From positions 434,001 through 498,000 of the forward strand of contig OU015566.1 of the NCBI GenBank assembly GCA_907165135.1: 64,000 nt of DNA, read 5' to 3'. The stretch is from Oikopleura dioica. Lineage: Eukaryota; Animalia; Chordata. Made by a program: the position numbers and the translations under genes. Of the stretch, positions 33,603 to 55,431 are shown one piece after another. The notes under the pieces were generated by a model. The model had not been told where the DNA came from and did not search any database. It worked only from the letters and a program-made list of their open reading frames with translations. Each line of letters starts with the position of its first letter. The first letter of the stretch is position 1.

Positions 33603-33866
33603 TGTTTGGTATTTTATTTGTAGTAAAGCTTTCGGTAGCAAGCTACCATCATCAGTACTAAAAAAGTTGTAAAATATTGGAACGAAGAAGTCTTTTCACC
33701 TTTGAGAGGCTTTTAAGGCACACTAAAGTTTCGAAAGAGAAAATTGGAGATAGTTGAATTTGGTCTAGAAAAAACTATAACCGACTCTGTTCTAAGCTCT
33801 ATTTTAAGCTTAACTACAAATAAAATACCAAACAAAATATCTTATGATGTCAAACAACCAGAGAAC
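33603..33866 (-). mobile_element. Non-coding Penelope-like mini-element with hammerhead ribozyme and inverted tail
   Basis: 264-nt insertion absent from the sister repeat copy, flanked by an 11-nt direct repeat TCACAATATTT (33592-33602 and 33867-33877). It carries a hammerhead, AATAAA, and a 35-nt inverted repeat (33597-33631 / 33806-33840). Confidence 0.7.
33621..33660 (-). ncRNA. Minimal type I hammerhead ribozyme
   Basis: Minus strand UAGUA-CUGAUGA-U-GGUAGC(UU)GCUACC-GAAA-GC-UU^UACUA: 5-bp stem I, 6-bp stem II, intact core, palindromic AGCU stem III, followed by AATAAA at 33618-33613. Confidence 0.85.
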
Positions 33867-41286: not shown

Positions 41287-44200
41287 TCAATTAAAAGCAG
41301 TTATAACTTCTTTGCCAGTAGCTCGGACGAGGACTGCTCGACAAATGTTTTTAGTCAAAGAGTCAAGAAATCGCATAAAGTGACGTTCAGTTTCTTCGTC
41401 GTGATCAATTGGGAAGGGTGGCATGTTGATGAAGACAAGATCCGAAGAAGCGGAATGCTTTTGAATAAGTCGATTTAGACCAGATGCCTCATGAATTTTC
41501 TTAAAAATAATCTTTTATCAAAGCATTTTCATAAAGCCTTAACTCTCATGACGGTAGCTCTCGGTTTAAGTTTTTTAAAACTTGAGATAGCACTGTTCAT
41601 AATACTTGTTCTTGCGACATTCATCACATGATCAATGTCTCTTGCAACCGTCTTTCGCGAGGGGCTTTCCGATGTTGCATAAGCATCTGTGTCCTCATCA
41701 CTGATTTCAACGATGTTCACTGAATATTTTATGTTAATTAACTTCGGCAATAATGCATATAATGAGTTGAGTTTCCATCATTTTATTGGGGAGTCACTTA
41801 ATAGCGCCGCCTTGCGCCGCCCAGTCCTGCTTCAAATTTTTCTTATCGAAGATTTTCGGCGTTTCAATGATGATTTTTTTCTGTTTTCTTATCAAAACGT
41901 TTATTCTCGTATATTTGAATAATCTGACCACCAGAAAAAAGAATACTTATAATTTAGGGTGTAATTATTGGGAGTCTAAATTATCTCCAGATTTCGCATA
42001 AAATCATCAATTTATTAAGCAAGCGACGGGCCAAAGGCCCTTACGCGCGCATTTTCTGGTAAAGAACTCATTGGGTTGGCGGGGCCCAACTTTCGCTCTT
42101 GTTCTGATCATTTAGTTTGGTCAGGATTTGGTCAAGGCGGCGCAAGGCGGCGCTATTCAGTACCCCCCTTTTATTGTGTTGAACGTTTTCGAGCAAAGCT
42201 CTTCATCAGAACACTAGGAGAAGGTAGAAACATAAGGAACAGAAAGGAAGAGTTAACCTGTAAAATTGTGCGGATGGGACTGACTCAAATTTTCTAGGTG
42301 CCAAAGACTTGGACAAAAAAACAGAACGTCTAGAGAATTTTTACGTGCGCCGCAGGGGCAAAAATGACAGGGGCACCGGAGTGCGCACGTAAAAGCCCCA
42401 TGTGACATGGGCCATGTCAGTTTTACACAAAGAGAACGGCCTTATGAGCGACTTGTTTATTCAAAATTGGAGATTGTAGCTTAATTTCAAGTGCTTCTGT
42501 TTGTTTTCTTTCTGTGAAAGGTAAATTTCGATGAAGTACCGAAAATCTCGATCGGAGGAACTGAGCTTTAATTGAAGGTTTGGTAGCACCCGGTAGCGCA
42601 TTTAGACCGGTCTCATATTGGTCACATTCATTGATATGCGGGTAAATGGCGGTATTTCCACTCGATTGCCCATGTTGCTCGATTCGGGCTTGGAGATTTT
42701 CACTTTCGCCGATGTAACTATTATGGCAAAGGCATTGAAATTTATACACGCAATTAACTGCTTTCAAGGGATCTGTTTTCGAATACAGATTATTTAAAAT
42801 CGTGTTTCGGATTGTAATCGTCTTGGAAGCGACAAGAACATTGTATTTCGGAGCGATTTCATGAAAAATATTTTTGATATTTTTAATAACCCGGCGCACT
42901 TTAAAATCCGTGAATGGGACTAAAAGGGAAAAATTTCTATCGGGTCGTTCTTGCTTTTCAAGTGCCCAGTCTATCATCTTTGGTCTAGGATTTTCTGCCT
43001 GATCTCGAGCCGAATTGATTGCTGACATAGTGAAGCCGGAATCAAGGTTCTTTTTTATGATGATTTTGTGATCTTTACGCTTTTCAGCCTCGGTTGAATT
43101 TTTCATATTTGATCTCTGAAAATCCCCAATTATTAACTCATTTTTAAAGTTTTTCAGGGCAACGCCCGTGTTACAGTGCATTGTTTTCCCGAGCTTTTGA
43201 TTTCAAAAAAATTACTCCCTTCCGGGCAATGAAGTTTAAAATCCAAAAATTTGAGTTCTCCGTCGACTGGTAGGTCTGTCGTAAATTTCAAATTTGAATG
43301 GGCTTGTTGGAAGGCCTTGGTAACTTCTGCCCTGTTTCCGATGGGTGTGATATGGAGGAGATCATCCATAAATCTTTTGTAGGCAATAATTTTGCCCTGT
43401 TTTTGAAATTTTTCAACAATCGGTTTCTCGATCTTTGAAAGGAAAAAATTTGCTAGGATCGTAGAAAAGGATGCACCCATACTGAGGCCCTTTTACGTGC
43501 GCGCTCCGGTGCCCCTGTCATTTTCGCGGCGCACGTACAAATTCTTTAGACGTTCTGTTTTTTTGTCCAAGTCTTTGGCACCTAGAAAATTTGAGTCAGT
43601 CCAATCCGCACAATTTTACAGGTTAACTCTTCCTTTCTGTTTCTTATGTTTCTACCTTCTCCTAGCGTTCTGATGAAGAGCTTTGCTCGAAAACGTTCAA
43701 CACAATAAAATGATGGAAACTCAATTATAAAACGTCAACTTCAATATAATAATGAGTTGATACTTCTTACTCAAGAAATTAACTTAAAGACGACCACCCT
43801 CATCGGATTTTTCTTTCAATAACTGGAAATTTTTATAGACACCATGTTTTTGATTCTAAAGAATATAGCTTGTTTAATTCAACTTTCGTAGCGACTAAAC
43901 GCGAGGTCGAATCTTTTTTATTTCCAGAGCAAGCCTACTTAATAATGCACGAAAAACTCAATTCTGGTATTTTTCTTTAATTTTCACCTAAATTTTTCAA
44001 GAGTCTAGAGCGACTTGAAATCTTACGGTCGCGATTTCTAAAAATTTTTCCACTTATCCGCTAAAACTAAACCGTGTTCTCTGTTGTTATGGTGCTAAGC
44101 TAGAAAATTGAAAGAATAAAATTCTCAAACTCGGTCATATTTTCATTCTAGTATTCTTCTCTTTCTTGCTCTTGCTTTTCTTCCCTGCACGCTTTATCGC

Positions 44201-47200
44201 GTGCAGCCAATCAAAGCGCTCGCAAAAACACGCACTCTCTCCCGGAAAAGAGGAGGCGAGAGAGCGAGCAGCGAGCGCAGCGCTTTTCATAGCTTCCGCG
44301 CGCTGAGGTAGCCTTATGAAAATGGCTGTAAAATCGGTTTCTTTCGGATAAAGAGAAAACTCTACCGTCAATTTTGTAGATAAAGGTCTTGAAAACTTAT
44401 TTATCGAAAAAACTCGACCGATTAAGTGAAAATTTTTCGATGAATCGCGATCGTAAGATTTTAAATCGCTCTAGAGTAGGGTCGGCCCTTTTCTAGTGAT
44501 GACCGCGGACGACTCTGATATTTTGTGGATATGATGGAGAGTATTAACCTGGCAAAATTTGAGCCGCGTCCGCCAAGATCAACAATGGTACGCCAGAGGG
44601 TTAAAAATCAAAAAAATTTTTTTTTTCAATAAATCGGATTTTCCTTCAACAAGAAACCAAAAAAAATGCACAGACATAATTTTTCGAGGCAAAAAAAAGG
44701 AATGATTATAATTTTAAAATTTTGATTTTCGTAATTTGAAATTTAAAAGTAAATTAATAGATAAAAACCATAATAAATCGAAAAATAGGAATAAGTTTAA
44801 TTTTTATGAAAACGGGTGTGGGTGGGGTTGGGGACAAAACTGAGATTGATCACCTTAGAGTTTAAATCCTCTCTCAAGCCCCTTTCGAAGGGCCGTCAAG
44901 CCCCTTAAAATTAAAAATCAAGGAAGGGGGCTGAGACGGCCCGAAGGGCCGTCAAGCCCCTTGAAATTAAAAATCAAGGAAGGGGGCTGAGACGGCCCGA
45001 AGGGCCGTCAAGCCCCTTAAAATTAAAAATCAAGGAACGGGGCTGAGACGGCCCGAAGGGCCGTCAAGCCCCTTAAAATTAAAAATCAAGGAACGGGGCT
45101 GAGACGGCCCTTTCCATTTGAAAAATCTTGTTTGAAAAAGCAGTCTTTTATATTTTTCTTATTATTTTTGACTCAAAAAACGTATTTTTCATCCACCTGT
45201 TCGTGGAAAATTGAAAAAATTTTTGATTTTAACCCCCTGGGGTACCATTGTTGATCTTGGCGGACGCGGCCCAAATTTTGCCAGGTTAACACTCTCCCCT
45301 AGGCATCATATCCACAAAAAATGAGAGTCGTCCGCGGTCATCACGTGAAAAGGGCCGACCCTACTCTAGAGAGAAAAATTCGAGAGAAAATTCGAGAGAA
45401 AAATTTTTAAAAAAATACAGAAATCGAATTCTCCGTCCATTTTTAGGTAGGATTGTACGTGAAATGAAAAAGATCCGACCTCGCCTTTAGCCGCTACGAA
45501 AGTTGAATTTTACAGGATATATCCTATAATCTTAGTCGTCCCAATCTACATATATTTTGGAATTGTCATTAGGGAATAGACAAATCCCATGCTTTTTTGC
45601 AAATCTATCTCATTAAAAAATTGGCCTGAGTTTGTTTATCGCGTTCCACCTTATTTTCGTTATATTTTTACCGTCTGCGAAGATTCTCATTTCAGAGAGA
45701 TATTCAACAAGTGCATTACGCATAGCTTCGACATTGTCGGAAGAATCAGCTGTAATGAAAACGCGAAGCTTGGCTTTCTTTCTTTTTCCAATCAAGGACG
45801 CAAGAAGAATACTGATTCCTCCATCTTGTCGGATCCACCAGACATCGATATTTCTTTGCGAACCGTTTTTCTGTTCTTCAGTGTTCTTGGAGACAATCAA
45901 GGCGCAATCTCTCTCGGCAGCATGACGAGCAGTATTGAAGAATAATGAGTATTTTTTTCTGTTAGGGCGTTTATTTTTATATAACATTCAATTTTAAAAA
46001 ATTATGAGTCATATTATCAATAATAATTTGATTTACAAGACTTGGTAAAAATTTATATTTTAAAAACATAAATTTTGCAAGAATGAAAGATGAAACGCTT
46101 TTCTATTAGTTACAACTGTAGGGAAATTCAGAACAATACAGTTTGGCTTAAGACCACTGATTCCTATGCATTGACAGATGAGTGGAATGTTTTCGGCGAG
46201 TTTTGGCGAAACCTTAGAATAGTTAAAAGAATCTAGTCGAGGTGGTTGAAGGTCCCTAAATAGAGGACGCTCTTATATCCGAGCATAACCAGATAACCAA
46301 ATAGATACAAGATAATAAAAAAGAGCCAATTTACGATTTTGCGGAGAAGAATCACGATAAATGGTGTTGTTAAAATTTGAAATCGTACGAGGATGGCAAA
46401 ACTGTGGTAACGGGCTTTGAAATTGACAATTTTGAAATTAACGCCGGAGCGCATATCGACACAATTTTCGGTAACGCGACTTTAAGATCCTCGTAATTCA
46501 ACATTTACTTTGCACGAAAAAATAATGAACCATTTTGAAATATTTTAGCATTTGAACGAAATTTGCTAGTCGCATAGATTTATTCTATTTTAGCGTTTAA
46601 CTGTTTCAGCGTTTCAGTAATTCAGTTAACCATCAACATTATTGGCAGTCGAAAAGGGGCATATTTTTCAAACTTTAAATTTCAATTTACGACAAAATTT
46701 ATTTATATAGTTAATTTTTATTTTTCGCTTTTCATAAGTGCTGCGTAGCCGCATCCCTTGCCCGCAATTTTTCTATTTTTTTCTTTTTAGAAGAAGCAAA
46801 ATTTAGTGCACCCTTTATCCGCGCTTTATGAATAGGGAAACTCCTCCCATAACTGTACCAGAATTTATCGCTTCCCATTTCTTATTCATAGACTTTTTTT
46901 ACTTACTGCAATAGAACACTCGACTGGAACGATGTTCATCTTTTTAAATTTTTCTCGTAGGTCCATTTCAATATCGTCTTTATCCTCCGAGTAATCCTTA
47001 TATTTTCCAGGAATTAGTGTTTTGATAATCGTGAGACCTCTCCCCTCCTTCAATTGAGCCACGAATTCTAAATTTTTTTCCATTAGCACCCAAAGTCGAT
47101 TTAACCAAAATTAGATGCATTGTTGCGAAAATTCCATACATAAATTTATCAGGAAAATCTAAATTTATCCTATTCCAAATATGGTAGAAAATTCGTGCTC

Positions 47201-50200: not shown

Positions 50201-53200
50201 CTAATACCCTTTCACCTCTTACCTTAAATGTTGGTCGCCACATTGGTAATTTCATCAAACTATTTATCGTTGTTGATAAATTCACAAAGAGGTAGCACAT
50301 AAGGTAGAAAATTGAGATGATCGGATTTATGGCTTCAATTTCACCGATCCATATGCAAGCCAAACATATGAGAACTAAATATTGAATAAATTGAATTTAT
50401 ACTGTAAAAGTCTTTTATTAATAGGCTATCAATGAAAACCTATCATTATAAAAATAACATACATGTTGGAATTATGGCAATAGTTGGCTCGTTTAGTACG
50501 CCACGTCCCCTCGCAAAAATATTGAATTTAGGAATAACATCGTCCTTAGCAATTGCCTGTAAAAGGCGAGGAGCACCAGTAAGCGATTGAAGCCCAGAAC
50601 CAATTGAAGCAAATAATGAACCAATAAGAATTATCCATGGGTGCGGCCAAGCAACAGAAGCATTCATAAGTATCTTTAATTTTAACCAAAAAGTATATTG
50701 AAATTTGTCATACTTGATTTCCGTTTCCGTTGTAAAGTGCGCTTCCAAATTTATCTCGCATTAAAGCTCCATCAGAAATAAGACCAATAAAAAGTGTGCT
50801 TGCTAGGTAAGCGATACCGGTGCTCAAAATAGCTGCAATCGTGCCACGTGGTATAGATTTTGATCCGTTCGCAAGGTCACCTGATCTATTAGATCCTGCC
50901 ATGATTCCTGTGACAGATGGAAAGAAAACTCCAATAAGCACCATGATGTTCGTAAATTCATTTCCAGAAGAAAGAGTTGATGTCACGTATGGAAAAGAAG
51001 TTTCTGTGTTGTTGATATCGATTTCTTCGCATGCATCTTTGTTCTCAAAAATATCTAATAAGAGGTTCATCGTGATTTTATCAGAATCAACAATATAGAA
51101 AACCAAGATTTAAGTATCTTACAATAAAAAGAGGTAAAACTTTGTTTAAGTTTAAGCTCCCTCATTTCTTTACAAAAGCTCAAGACCTTTTTCAGCAATC
51201 GAGAAATTGCTCCCCTGTTTTTTTATTATTGTTTTACCTCAGAAGAAACATGTTTATTGAGGATGACGTTTATCTTATCAGTTTAACTTCAGGGGGTAGA
51301 AACAGCTTTCTCGATTTTGGACCGTAGCTACATAAAAGATAATATCAGATTTATTTATGTTTACAGAATTTCCTCATAAATGCTCCTTAAAAAGGGGTTC
51401 AGCTTCACAAAATGTGAATGAAATTTGTTTCCCTGTTACGTGACTCGAGATATTCGAGCTTGAAAATGTGCAAAAATCGAGAATTTCGGAGAGATTAGTT
51501 GCTTCTGAGCCTAATTACTCAAAAATTTGATGATAAACCAAATTTCGAGGGAGATGTTCCTAGATGTTAAATGTTTCTGTCTAAATATGAAAAGAAAAAT
51601 TGAAAATCAAAGATTTTCTTGTCTGTAGCGCCGGTCAAAAATAACCTATTTTCGAAAAAAGCTGTTTCTACCCCCATAAAGAAAAAATTATTTATCTGTT
51701 GATGAGAAATTTTGTCGCGGAGCCATCGTCCAAAAAGTTCAAGATAGAAAAAAATTCAACTTACTACATAATTTATCTACAAGAATTTGTCGCCTTACCC
51801 AGATTCTCCCGTAGATATTTATGCAAATAAGTAGTAGCAATCTCAGAATTCTGTAGCAATGAAAAATTTGTATATCTTTTTTTGAAAGAGACGCTACATT
51901 TTTCGACAGAATAAACGTCTTTTTTCCGGTTTATTCAATGGTCGTTGTGATTTTAAGATCTCCAATTATTAATAAATAACCGCGTTAAACGCTTGAGCGG
52001 AGCGAGCAATTGAGCGAATAGTCCAAAAAGAGCCGTGAGCTTATCAAGCGGAATTTGAGCGAGCGGACTCTAAGCAGTTTCTCTCAAAAAACATTTTTTC
52101 AAATTTTTTGTAAAGTTTCGACTAGCGTCGGAGATAAATTTCCCAAATGCAGTTGAAAAAATCGAAAGATTAGATAGAAAAGTGTTTTTTACCAATTGTT
52201 TCGCTCGGTCGCCGCTTTCTCACGCTCAAGTACCGCTCACCGGTCAATAAAAATTTGAGCCCTGAGAATATGATAGAGAACCTTTCCTTGTATTATTTCA
52301 TTGCGACGAAGGTGAGCAACCCAAGCATCATCTTTGCAAATCCACTGATGCTGATGATCATCTTTATGACGATCAGGGAACTCAATAAATTCGAATTTAT
52401 CACATTGAATCACATTTTCAGTTTCATTTCTTCGATCTTGAAAATATAATATTAGCTTAATTTAGCTTCTGATTTACCTGTAAGAAGCTCTGGAATATTA
52501 ATACGCCCATTGTGTATTCTGTAATGCTTAGGTTGCCAATTCCAGTTTTCTTCGGAATAAACATCAGCAGATATTTTTCGAGAGAGACCAGGAACTCCAT
52601 GTCTATTCCAAACAGGTGCAGCAAGAAGGGATTCGTATCGACAACCAGCATAAGGGGCTAAGAAAAGAGTTCCTAAATGTCATAAGCTATTCAAAAATAA
52701 TAGCAGAATAAGAAAGAAACGATCGATCACAAATAAGGCTGATTATGCGAAGCAAAATACAATGAATTTTACTAACGTTTAACGAACTCTCCTTCGGGAT
52801 CAAAATTAACCAAATTGTGAACATCATTATCGGCTTGACAGAAATTCTTAAAAATTTCAGTAGGAGTCTTGCATTTCCACTGATTTTGGTCATAGACGCA
52901 TTTTGCCTGATAGAAATGAGTATCATTGCGGCCATTGACTGTTGTTCTTGGTAAGCAAAAATCGTTGGTATCAACATCGGCGCAGTCATTTTCTTTATTA
53001 TAAAAGTCAGTTTCCACAAATTTAGGCATTTCTTCAAGAAATTTGAAGCACAAACCATCACGAGGTCTCTGAAAATCTTTGAATAGAAAAATCAATGCAG
53101 AAAGATTTTTAATCTGACCTTTGCAACAGTATCTCCAATCATACACATTATGGTATTCATATTTGGGCCAGATGCGGATGAGAAAAATCCAATAAATAGG

Positions 53201-55431
53201 GCAAGAGTTGACACAATAACGCAGATCAAAACTGGAAATGCTAGCTTGTTGATATATTTCATCCCTGCAAGCACCACAAGAGCCATGCAAATAAGAAGGA
53301 TCGTTCCCAAAACTCGGAAATTATCGTACATGCCAGAAATACCAAAGGAGGATCCAAGGAAGGACTCACCGTCGATGTCAAATATTCGAAGGACGCCCAT
53401 GTAGAGTGTCACAATTTCGATGGAACCTGAATTTGCAGGATGAATGAAATAGTTTTCTTAGGAGTTTTCAGCGCCACACCAAAGTACGCCAATGTCGCGG
53501 TGCAGGGCCTCTTTGCCCTTGATTGTTTTCAATTTTTCACGGACAAAAATATAAAAAGTGAATCAAAATAGACGAAATTCGGATACTGCTGAGATCCAGG
53601 AGGATCAAATAGTACGATTAAGCCCTTCCAATAAATGAATAGTTGCACTGTAACAGGGTGTCGGGCGGCGACGGTACAAATATGACTGGTATAGCAGTTA
53701 GCGGGACGGAACTGGGCACCGATACTTCTTGCCCTGTTTCGCACCCCGGGTATAGCTGAGGTGGAGCTCTATCCAAAAGTGAATTTTATAATGGGTAAAA
53801 ATTGTTTATCAAAAAGATTATGATTTTTTACCGGCAGGACGAAAAATTTGTACCCGCGGTATAAATTCTACTTTTGCACCGCGGCCGCCCGCCTCTCTGT
53901 AGCACGATTCTCGGAGATTGCGGGCGACTACGTTTGTAATCGGTTCTAAGAACCGGATAAGTATATAAAATAATAATGAGCTCTATTTAATAAAAAGCTT
54001 TAAAACGGGTGTAGAGCGGCTACGTAACAAATACCAGTAGTAGTTAAAATTGTTACGGCGTTACTAAAACTCAAAATAAAAATCATTCAACGAGTGTGCG
54101 TTTCGCGCTTGAATTGAAGAAAACTAGTTTTGGTTTACCTTATTGCGTATTCTGTCAAAAATAATAAAGATTACGAAATTGAAAATAATTTTTATTGCGA
54201 AAAAAATCTAAATTTTTGTAACGGCGTTAAAAAATTGTAAAGGCGTTACAAATTTGTAACGTAGCCGGCCGTCCCCCTGAAAACTCATACAGTTAAACTA
54301 AAAAACTTCTTAGCAGATAAGAACTATTATTAATAGTCTATTTACTTTCATAAGAGACGCTGTAAGAGGCTGATAAATCGTCTCTTCCGACAGATACATA
54401 AGACAGAATAAAAGGCGCATTCCAGCCCCGTTCCTTGATTTTTAATTTTAAGGGGCTTGACAGAGGCCTGGAACTCTAAATTGATCAATCTCAGTTACGT
54501 CCCCAACCCCGCCCACACCCGTTGATATTAAAATTTGAATTATCCTTGTTTTGTTCTTAATTATGGTTTTTATAAGACGTCGTTAAATATCTTTAACAAC
54601 TTGTTTCTCTTGAGTAAAAACAGTTGTAAAAGAGTTTTTACAGTGAAATTAACGATTTTTAGTTTTTCATTTTTTCCCTCTGATGGATGAGGATGGATCC
54701 GGATGAGGTTTTTACGACGATAAAAATGATTAGTGATCACCAAGGATCAATTTTGTGCATAAAATCCCTAATCTAAATCGGCTTTGAGAAAAATCGCATT
54801 TTGACCTCAGGTGACCTCAGGTGACCTTTGATGACCCCAAGTCACATGTTAAAACGATCAGTGGAACTTAGGCTTTCCATCGATGTATCATTCATCATTA
54901 TAAGAGCATGATATAAAAATCGATTTTCCCACTGTGCACCCCCTACGCATTACCCAAAAACGGGTCGATATGTTCTTTGACTTACCAATTATCATTCCAG
55001 CAGCAGCGATTGTGATTCCACAGTAGAACATAAGTCCAACGGCGGCACCCCAGCCGGGACCGAGTGATCTCGAAATCATGTAGTAGCTTCCACCTGCTGG
55101 GACTTTTCCGTTTGTAGCAATAGCGCTCATTGAAATCGATGTGAGCATTGTCGTCAAGCAAAAAAAAGAAATCATCCCAAAGCATTCCCAAATACCAGCA
55201 AGGCCAACCATCCAGGGCAGACGAATGAACAGAAGAACACCAAAAATATTTTGAACACAAGGCAGATACACTCCCATCATCGTACCGAGCTTAGACGATT
55301 TTTCATCTTTTTCATTTTTCTCGATTTCGCCGAGACTTGGCGTGAAGCTGGTATAACTTCCAACTTGCTGAGAAAATTTTAGTTTTTTGTCTCCTCCAAA
55401 AAGTGTTTTTTCTTTTTTGGGATATATAATC
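41287..55431 (-). CDS. K-Cl cotransporter-type cation-chloride cotransporter (SLC12A4-7/KCC family), divergent
   Basis: Exons 55431?-54986, 53426-53119, 53068-52777, 52657-52478, 52436-52282, (unresolved), 51054-50714, 50673-50463, 50374-50223, 48980-48793, 48697-48573, 47067-46907, 46212-46097, 45958-45672, 41719-41544, 41499-41287. KCC motifs: [90 protein letters not shown]...[20 protein letters not shown] at 41220-41215. The start codon was not located. Confidence 0.95.
41789..42168. mobile_element. MITE inserted in the left PLE pseudo-LTR
   Basis: Direct repeat TTTTATT(G) at 41781-41788 and 42169-42176; subterminal inverted repeats gcgccgccttgcgccgcc / ggcggcgcaaggcggcgc; related partial copies at about 22780-23150 and 55480-55590. 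Confidence 0.8.
42176..42214 (-). ncRNA. Minimal type I hammerhead ribozyme in PLE 3' pseudo-LTR
   Basis: GUGUU-CUGAUGA-A-GAGC(UUU)GCUC-GAAA-ACGU-UC^AACAC: perfect 5-bp stem I, palindromic AACGUU stem III, UUC cleavage triplet, followed directly by AATAAA. Confidence 0.85.
42423..43489 (-). pseudogene. Penelope-like reverse transcriptase C-terminal half plus GIY-YIG endonuclease, frameshifted
   Basis: [28 protein letters not shown] and FLD (RT motifs 4-7); after a frame change near 43160-43180, [21 protein letters not shown] and [13 protein letters not shown] (GIY-YIG with the PLE Cys/His residues). Confidence 0.92.
43665..43703 (+). ncRNA. Hammerhead ribozyme copy in inverted 5' pseudo-LTR
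   Basis: GCGUU-CUGAUGA-A-GAGC(UUU)GCUC-GAAA-ACGU-UC^AACAC; same as the 42176 copy except one stem I mismatch (C at 43666); AATAAA at 43704-43709. Confidence 0.8.
44470..45370. mobile_element. Foldback element with about 150-bp arms enclosing a minisatellite
   Basis: ctagagtagggtcggccctttt...ggttaaaaatcaaaaaa at 44470-44620 is inverted at about 45215-45370. Confidence 0.75.
44887..45110. repeat. Four-copy 56-bp minisatellite of hairpin-forming units
   Basis: Unit gaagggccgtcaagcccctt(a/g)aaattaaaaatcaaggaa(g/c)ggggctgagacggccc, four times; single-unit relatives at about 54422-54460 and 62320-62365. Confidence 0.9.
49296..49618 (+). mobile_element. Solo LTR (323 bp) in KCC intron
   Basis: TGTTA...ACAACA ends with 4-bp TSD TTAT (49292-49295 and 49619-49622); TATAAAA near 49491 followed by AATAAA near 49549. 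A 4-bp TSD is typical of Ty3/gypsy elements. Confidence 0.85.

Follow-up and report, generated by a model that had tools for sequence, protein, structure and literature searches.

What is the inverted-repeat structure that occupies an intron of a predicted KCC-type SLC12 gene in Oikopleura dioica, and does it matter to the gene that carries it? The locus lies within 64,000 nucleotides of contig OU015566.1 (GenBank assembly GCA_907165135.1, forward-strand positions 434,001 to 498,000), a stretch that we refer to as the window and number from its first letter. The original prediction, made from the sequence alone, described a Penelope-like element (PLE) with inverted pseudo-long terminal repeats (pseudo-LTRs), each carrying a hammerhead ribozyme, and implied that these could act on the host transcript. 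We are highly confident that the structure arose when a canonical endonuclease-bearing PLE inserted once at an AT-rich site of the intron. It is a decayed, 5'-truncated Penelope copy and an ordinary example of a well-described kind, all of its features having already been described for PLEs.

The coding part of the element is on the minus strand and consists of a reverse transcriptase (RT) fragment, which runs from the motif GLSMG onward, followed by a GIY-YIG endonuclease. Two overlapping open reading frames (ORFs), 43154-43480 (extending to 43489) and 42423-43181, cover this region, and 360 codons of RT and endonuclease are retained at the locus. Canonical PLEs are defined by this arrangement, in which a single ORF encodes an RT and, C-terminal to it, a GIY-YIG domain (PMC11167929, PMC8557442). 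Searches of the O. dioica genome gave at least 78 matches to the endonuclease piece and 35 to the RT piece, several of them within contiguous open frames of 820-850 aa. When the two pieces were aligned with seven of these relatives, the shared blocks comprised GxSMG (motif 4), YxRFxDD (motif 5), the thumb, the linker and a GIY-YIG block of the form FxCxC..YIGE(S/T)..R..H..E..N. In the relatives, one uninterrupted frame encodes RT and endonuclease; in the window copy, one frameshift separates them.

The alignment also has a C-x-C and His/Cys columns inside the endonuclease, that is, the CCHH motif, and no cysteine pair of a CX2-5CxxC linker between the thumb and the GIY-YIG motif. The motif criterion of PMC8557442, rather than a tree, points to an element of the Penelope/Poseidon type. 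Among the aligned relatives from the same genome, Pfam RVT_1 was matched with E values down to 8.4e-11. GIY-YIG was matched in five of the nine aligned sequences, all below the gathering score (best E, 0.0013), and the three full-length relatives searched alone gave only a weak GIY-YIG match. The ESM Atlas provided leads only, in the form of animal clusters with RVT_1, GIY-YIG and HTH_animal. The proposed PLE with an RT and GIY-YIG ORF is supported by domain matches, relatives and the protein alignment.

The repeats of the element are arranged in opposite orientation. In the window, they comprise segments of 185 nt (42169-42353 and 43526-43710, 97% identity), 38 nt (42358-42395 and 43490-43527, 95% identity) and a terminal 22 nt (41767-41788 and 43703-43724, 100% identity). 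The left arm is split by a miniature inverted-repeat transposable element (MITE), whose 8-bp target duplication, TTTTATTG, is found at 41781-41788 and 42169-42176. The family of this MITE has at least 71 matches in the genome, ranges in size from 380 to 500 bp and has 33-nt terminal inverted repeats that begin with GGGAGTCACTTAATAGCGCCGCC (L073-L077); all six copies examined have 8-bp duplications of their own. Once the MITE had been removed together with one of the two copies of its target duplication, the arms were 241 nt and 235 nt long; they matched at 229 positions, differed at 6 and had one 6-nt indel between them (97% identity), as befits the inverted pseudo-LTRs that had been proposed. 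The RT frame, GLSMGASFS..., begins at 43489 on the minus strand and directly adjoins the arm that starts at 43490, exactly the break that had been described.

The outer limits of the element could be set by a short direct repeat. The 12-bp sequence ATAATGAGTTGA is found twice in the window, immediately outside the two ends of the insertion and nowhere else, compared with an expectation of 0.02 matches. The 24 nt that form the outer end of the inverted arm are common to four other copies of the family, and the other ends stop at ...GGAAAC. Consequently, the element that had been placed at 41767-43724 is real, and its boundaries have to be moved: the right end is at 43748, and the true left edge is at about 41771, with the TTGA at 41767-41770 belonging also to the 12-bp target-site duplication. 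Neither this duplication nor the tail to 43748, the frameshift or the nested MITE was part of the original prediction. Between the two copies of the target duplication, a 5'-truncated sense copy, which runs from RT motif 4 to the stop codon and ends with a 3' pseudo-LTR of 241 nt, is joined head-to-head to an inverted pseudo-LTR of 235 nt, with the 24-nt tail outermost (Table 1). Since its insertion, the copy has acquired the frameshift, the nested MITE and the six substitutions and indel between the arms, and it is therefore considered dead.

Table 1. Features of the PLE insertion and of the flanking host exons (window coordinates)
Feature	Position	Strand	Remarks
Host exon downstream of the insertion	41524..41719	-	Predicted acceptor AG at 41721-41720
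Left copy of the target-site duplication, ATAATGAGTTGA, 12 bp	41759..41770	+	Last 4 nt are also the element end (microhomology)
Outermost 18 nt of the sense (ORF-side) pseudo-LTR	41771..41788	-	Ends ...GGAAAC, without tail; separated from the rest by the MITE
Nested MITE, 380 bp	41789..42168	.	33-nt terminal inverted repeats; 8-bp target duplication
Main part of the sense pseudo-LTR (3' untranslated region of the element)	42169..42395	-	Repeat and genome matches
Sense hammerhead motif, minimal type-I	42174..42216	-	Sense to ORF and host gene
ORF piece with RT thumb, linker and GIY-YIG, 252 aa	42423..43181	-	Stop codon at end
RT piece, motif 4 (GLSMG) to motif 5 (FMDD)	43154..43489	-	5' truncation at 43489
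Frameshift between the RT-frame and endonuclease-frame pieces	43181..43190	-	One frame in relatives
Inverted pseudo-LTR arm, 235 nt	43490..43724	+	Antisense to host gene
Hammerhead motif of the inverted arm	43663..43705	+	Stem I weakened by a C.A mismatch
Penelope tail, ~24 nt	43725..43748	+	Outer end of the inverted arm only; contains GTCAAC
Right copy of the target-site duplication, 12 bp	43749..43760	+	
Host exon upstream of the insertion (...EMRIFAD)	45672..45954	-	Predicted donor GT at 45671-45670

Each arm contains a minimal type-I hammerhead motif, an AACGUU palindrome and an AATAAA. The window contains the pattern CTGATGA-12 nt-GAAAACGTTC at two places only, 42181-42209 on the minus strand and 43670-43698 on the plus strand, with 0 occurrences expected in 64 kb. 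The sense motif can be read as stem I (GUGUU/AACAC), the core CUGAUGA, an unpaired A, stem II (GAGC/GCUC) and GAAA, with the palindrome ACGU as helix III. The 5 bp of its stem I are perfect, as had been stated for the ORF-side copy, and the predicted cleavage site, after the C between 42181 and 42180, is the one originally given and agrees with numbering by hand. In the inverted arm, stem I (GCGUU/AACAC) contains a C.A mismatch. Both arms have the core nucleotides C3-U4-G5-A6-N7-G8-A9, G12-A13-A14 and A15.1-U16.1, as well as a nucleotide other than G at H17.

Among the loci scanned in the same genome, many other Penelope families had this hammerhead design near their 3' ends, in at least 14 stem variants whose stems were quite dissimilar. 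Among matches chosen by the core only, with no preselection of stems, both stems were present in 38 of 101, as opposed to 0.35 when the stem regions were shuffled. This comparison serves as the noncircular control for a set of 20 variants that had been picked by a stem filter. In that set, the core columns were invariant and 93% of the cells were paired (24-38% in slid controls). Changes on both sides of a pair were found in 75 cells versus 20 in shuffles, and the covariation score was 0.845 versus 0.163, with none of 500 shuffles scoring as high. Helix III was not constrained by the filter; 98% of its cells were palindromic, and its six versions (ACGU, AGCU, UCGA, CGCG, CCGG and GAUC) fit a predicted ability of the motif to form dimers.

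In most, not all, of the PLE families, an AATAAA follows hammerhead stem I at a distance of 0-10 nt, an example from the window being that at 42170-42175 on the minus strand. This AATAAA may serve as the poly(A) signal of the element itself. In the window copy, this signal was doubled by the target duplication of the MITE. The window also contains a second minimal hammerhead, which belongs to another PLE family (33619-33662, minus strand; stem I UAGUA/UACUA, palindrome AGCU).

Several results weigh against the assignment. In the window copy, the Pfam matches to RVT_1 (17.8 bits) and GIY-YIG (E = 0.0013) were both below the gathering cutoffs. The profile search of the PDB had as its best match 8bgj (1.2e-9), a CRISPR-associated RT (PMC10415136), followed by RTs of retrons and group II introns; telomerase, whose RT is the sister group of PLE RTs in phylogenies, was ranked below these RTs (E = 0.09), and the search did not set telomerase-like RTs apart from the rest. 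The assembly contained no full-length copy of the element's own family, the best other copies being fragments with 65-79% protein identity and 77-96% DNA identity; for this reason, the origin of the tail has to be deduced from other families. Finally, no hammerhead family was recognized by Rfam, whether 3.5 kb were scanned with E values of up to 1 or a 91-nt piece with E values of up to 10.

With respect to the hammerhead, published minimal motifs of PLEs were found with a dedicated descriptor and not with a covariance model (PMC4209133). A single-sequence fold of 61 nt likewise gave no hammerhead and was no better than shuffles, which is the expected outcome for a monomer because the minimal motif is dimer dependent. 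Given the strong covariation of its stems, we regard the motif as a real family feature although Rfam misses it. Judged by sequence comparison, it is a conserved structured part of PLE families.

Known systems provide further points of reference. The element resembles canonical endonuclease-bearing PLEs, such as Penelope of Drosophila virilis and Poseidon PAc of Anolis carolinensis, in the RT with a C-terminal GIY-YIG domain, the internal Cys/His motifs, the pseudo-LTRs that can be inverted, the inverted 5'-truncated partner, the optional tail at one end, the AT-rich insertion site with a target duplication and the hammerhead motif in the pseudo-LTR. It differs from them in belonging to a small family of tunicate elements, whose sister families have complete units of about 2.75 kb, and in the position of its hammerhead, some 20-30 nt before the 3' end and directly followed by AATAAA. 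The minimal hammerheads of metazoan PLEs are found in pseudo-LTRs, with an unpaired nucleotide 5' of stem II and in pairs on opposite strands (Cervera and de la Pena 2014, PMC4209133). The motif in the window shares with them the core CUGANGA...GAAA...UH, a helix I of 4-5 bp, one unpaired nucleotide on the 5' side of helix II, a near-absent helix III whose palindrome permits dimers and the occurrence of opposite-strand pairs close together at truncated insertions. Its predicted helix II has 4 bp, in contrast to 7-8 bp in the PLE hammerheads of Schistosoma. Non-LTR retrozymes also have type-I hammerheads related to those of PLE pseudo-LTRs (PMC7229834; bioRxiv 10.64898/2026.07.22.740005), but they are noncoding tandem repeats that give rise to circular RNAs, whereas the window locus is coding and consists of a single insertion with a target duplication.

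We then examined the gene into which the element had inserted. Pfam matches to AA_permease/SLC12 were found on the minus strand at 54987-55271, 50774-51007, 45682-45954 and 41293-41532. In the search with the first exon, KCC2, KCC3, KCC4 and KCC1 were matched at about 1e-34 and NKCC1 at 3e-20, and in exon-by-exon searches the exon upstream of the insertion also had KCCs as its best match. These matches identify the host as a KCC-type SLC12 gene that lies on the same strand as the element, in agreement with the original placement of the element in a KCC intron. The splice sites of the host were predicted from sequence only; they define a GT-AG intron of 3,952 nt, across which the flanking exons join in frame. 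These two exons and the last coding exon were open where examined.

The element and the MITE together account for half of the intron, and the 3' end of the element lies about 50 nt upstream of the predicted acceptor. The next intron of the host (41480-41523, minus strand) has a predicted length of only 44 nt. As the comparison of 44 nt with 3,952 nt illustrates, insertions of this kind strongly inflate single introns in this compact genome. The 3,952-nt intron also contains a pair of 53-nt inverted repeats 366 nt apart (44004-44475) and two tandem 56-nt units (44886-44997), which are probably further small repeats.

Could the insertion act on its host? The element, its ORF and the left hammerhead are all sense to the gene, so that the hammerhead, the AAUAAA or the hairpin of about 230 bp might cleave, terminate, edit or silence the KCC pre-mRNA. 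The proximity of the element to the predicted acceptor would favor such an effect, as would the intact stems of the sense hammerhead and the high stability of the hairpin. The predicted RNA structure argues otherwise. In the minimum-energy fold of 2.1 kb of intronic RNA, 210 of 227 nt of the sense arm were paired with the antisense arm, including every nucleotide of the sense hammerhead, with a duplex energy of -389.5 kcal/mol; the antisense arm is transcribed before the sense arm. The arms should therefore form a hairpin of about 230 bp in the host pre-mRNA, burying the single sense hammerhead.

Even outside the hairpin, helix III of the sense motif would have 2 bp with a 2-nt loop, so that the monomer could not fold. 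The one other sense hammerhead in the window, that at 33619-33662, has the palindrome AGCU and not ACGU. In addition, the window copy encodes no element protein, and minimal PLE hammerheads cleave poorly without the element protein or a partner (PMC4209133, PMC11167929). Since the motif is predicted to pair with the antisense arm and lacks another sense copy as a dimerization partner, self-cleavage of the host RNA is unlikely, and so is premature termination. We rejected the AATAAA as a special poly(A) trap because of its frequency: there are 92 such hexamers on the minus strand of the window (1.4 per kb), 6 of them in the host intron. The open host exons and the in-frame joining of the flanking pair also speak against a disturbance of the gene. 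An action of the insertion on its host is therefore improbable, and the implied significance for the host does not hold, resting as it did on published PLE features, a common hexamer and a hammerhead that is predicted to be locked in a hairpin. Most likely, the insertion has no effect on the host beyond a longer intron.

A different explanation would be that the inverted repeats are those of a DNA transposon, either a MITE or a foldback element, that has captured or come to flank an unrelated RT fragment. Terminal inverted repeats flanked by a direct repeat do look superficially like a MITE, and a genuine MITE is present inside the left arm. The possibility that the arms occur genome-wide as a MITE independent of the ORF had been raised in the original prediction. 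We found only 11 matches to the arm, at about 7 loci. These matches shared the same 3' end, and their 5' ends were scattered (query positions 1, 105, 107, 125, 149 and 196). The target duplications were of unequal length, 12 and 13 bp, and the tail was found at one end only. Furthermore, the arm continues from the 3' untranslated region of the ORF, other copies keep remnants of the ORF, and full-length families have the arm as a pair of direct pseudo-LTRs that flank an 840-aa ORF. Because of the few 3'-anchored copies, the variable length of the duplication and the ORF remnants, we rejected the MITE or foldback interpretation, which is highly improbable. That the inverted duplication is an artifact of long-read assembly has a negligible probability: tandem and inverted PLE structures are known to trouble assemblies (PMC8557442), but the arms differ by six substitutions and a 6-nt indel, the MITE is in one arm only, a clean 12-bp target duplication surrounds the whole unit and the architecture recurs at independent loci.

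With a single PLE insertion as the preferred reading, the inverted arm can be considered in the light of what is known of PLE retrotransposition. Tails and inverted 5'-truncated copies are known in PLEs (PMC8557442). In vitro, both target strands are cut and extended by the Anolis element; reverse transcription starts at two adjacent internal sites, the spacing of which defines the tail, and the hammerhead is protein assisted (PMC11167929). By analogy, the PLE endonuclease would have cut both strands of the target, and each 3' end would have primed reverse transcription. The sense cDNA would have been started at the upstream site, which leaves no tail, and would have stopped, or been joined, inside RT motif 4. 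The cDNA of the inverted arm would have been primed by the other strand at the downstream site and have run to a fixed end, probably the 5' end of the RNA, after which the two cDNAs would have been joined at 43489/43490. Under such two-strand priming, which is the simplest reading of how the insertion arose, the RT break at GLSMG would have no special meaning. The hammerheads would have been inherited within the pseudo-LTR; their presumed role in PLEs is the processing of tandem transcripts, as dimers and with the assistance of the element protein.

Full-length families of the same genome display this architecture in a more complete form. In five full-length sister families, an inverted arm of about 200-235 nt and a direct pseudo-LTR are separated by a gap of 15-70 nt, and the direct pseudo-LTR is followed by a 2.5-kb ORF and then by another pseudo-LTR. 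In all five, the 25-30 nt at the outer end of the inverted arm are the same as the sequence that follows the 5' pseudo-LTR. This tail stretch includes the ATG of the ORF in L080, L081 and L084, and the ATG lies beyond it in L082. The sense 3' pseudo-LTR of the full-length families ends without the tail sequence, which is thus found on the inverted arm only. The tails of six PLE families have the motif GTCAAC in common (43734-43739 in the window copy), which may mark the downstream start site of reverse transcription. In several families, GTCAAC overlaps the start codon of the ORF (ATGTCAAC).

The end of the inverted arm opposite to the tail is shared as well. An independent insertion of the window family (L003) has a 13-bp target duplication of its own, CTTTTCTATTCAT, and arms that are 100% identical, and its inverted arm ends at exactly the same nucleotide as that of the window copy (43490; L003:1339/1500). 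A GC-rich hairpin has its base at this shared end, some 28 nt past the stop codon. We tentatively suggest, as a possibility rather than the probable course of events, that the inverted arm is not a random truncation and that it arose as a run-off cDNA copied from the 5' leader of the RNA, with priming at the downstream site just inside the start of the ORF and termination at the RNA's 5' end. This would explain the shared nucleotide at the end of the arm, the confinement of the tail to the inverted arm and the 15- to 70-nt gap to the 5' pseudo-LTR. Modulation of the KCC transcript by the hammerhead or the hairpin is less likely still. If the run-off reading is true, each PLE insertion records how the two cleaved target strands made use of both ends of one terminally redundant RNA.

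The KCC locus itself is of very little significance, being a decayed intronic retroelement. The wider survey bears on the repeat content of the species. A 28-nt piece of the O. dioica spliced leader had 51 exact matches in the assembly (55 with up to 2 mismatches allowed), mostly arranged as inverted pairs; contig 3 had none, and a control pattern matched nowhere. In the paper on the Okinawan O. dioica genome (OKI2018_I69), to which the assembly corresponds, PLEs were described as "almost absent" (PMC8008620). Our census contradicts this statement: the endonuclease had at least 78 matches, no fewer than 14 hammerhead stem variants were present, and at least five ORFs of 820-850 aa were intact. 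The pseudo-LTRs were 100% identical in three of the five full-length elements examined (L080-L084), which suggests recent PLE activity. Given the intact ORFs and the identical pseudo-LTRs, part of the 44% of repeats that are unclassified are probably active PLEs. These compact PLEs show the tail and inverted-arm architecture cleanly, and they may be natural footprints of the two-start-site, two-strand priming model that was derived in vitro from the Anolis element.

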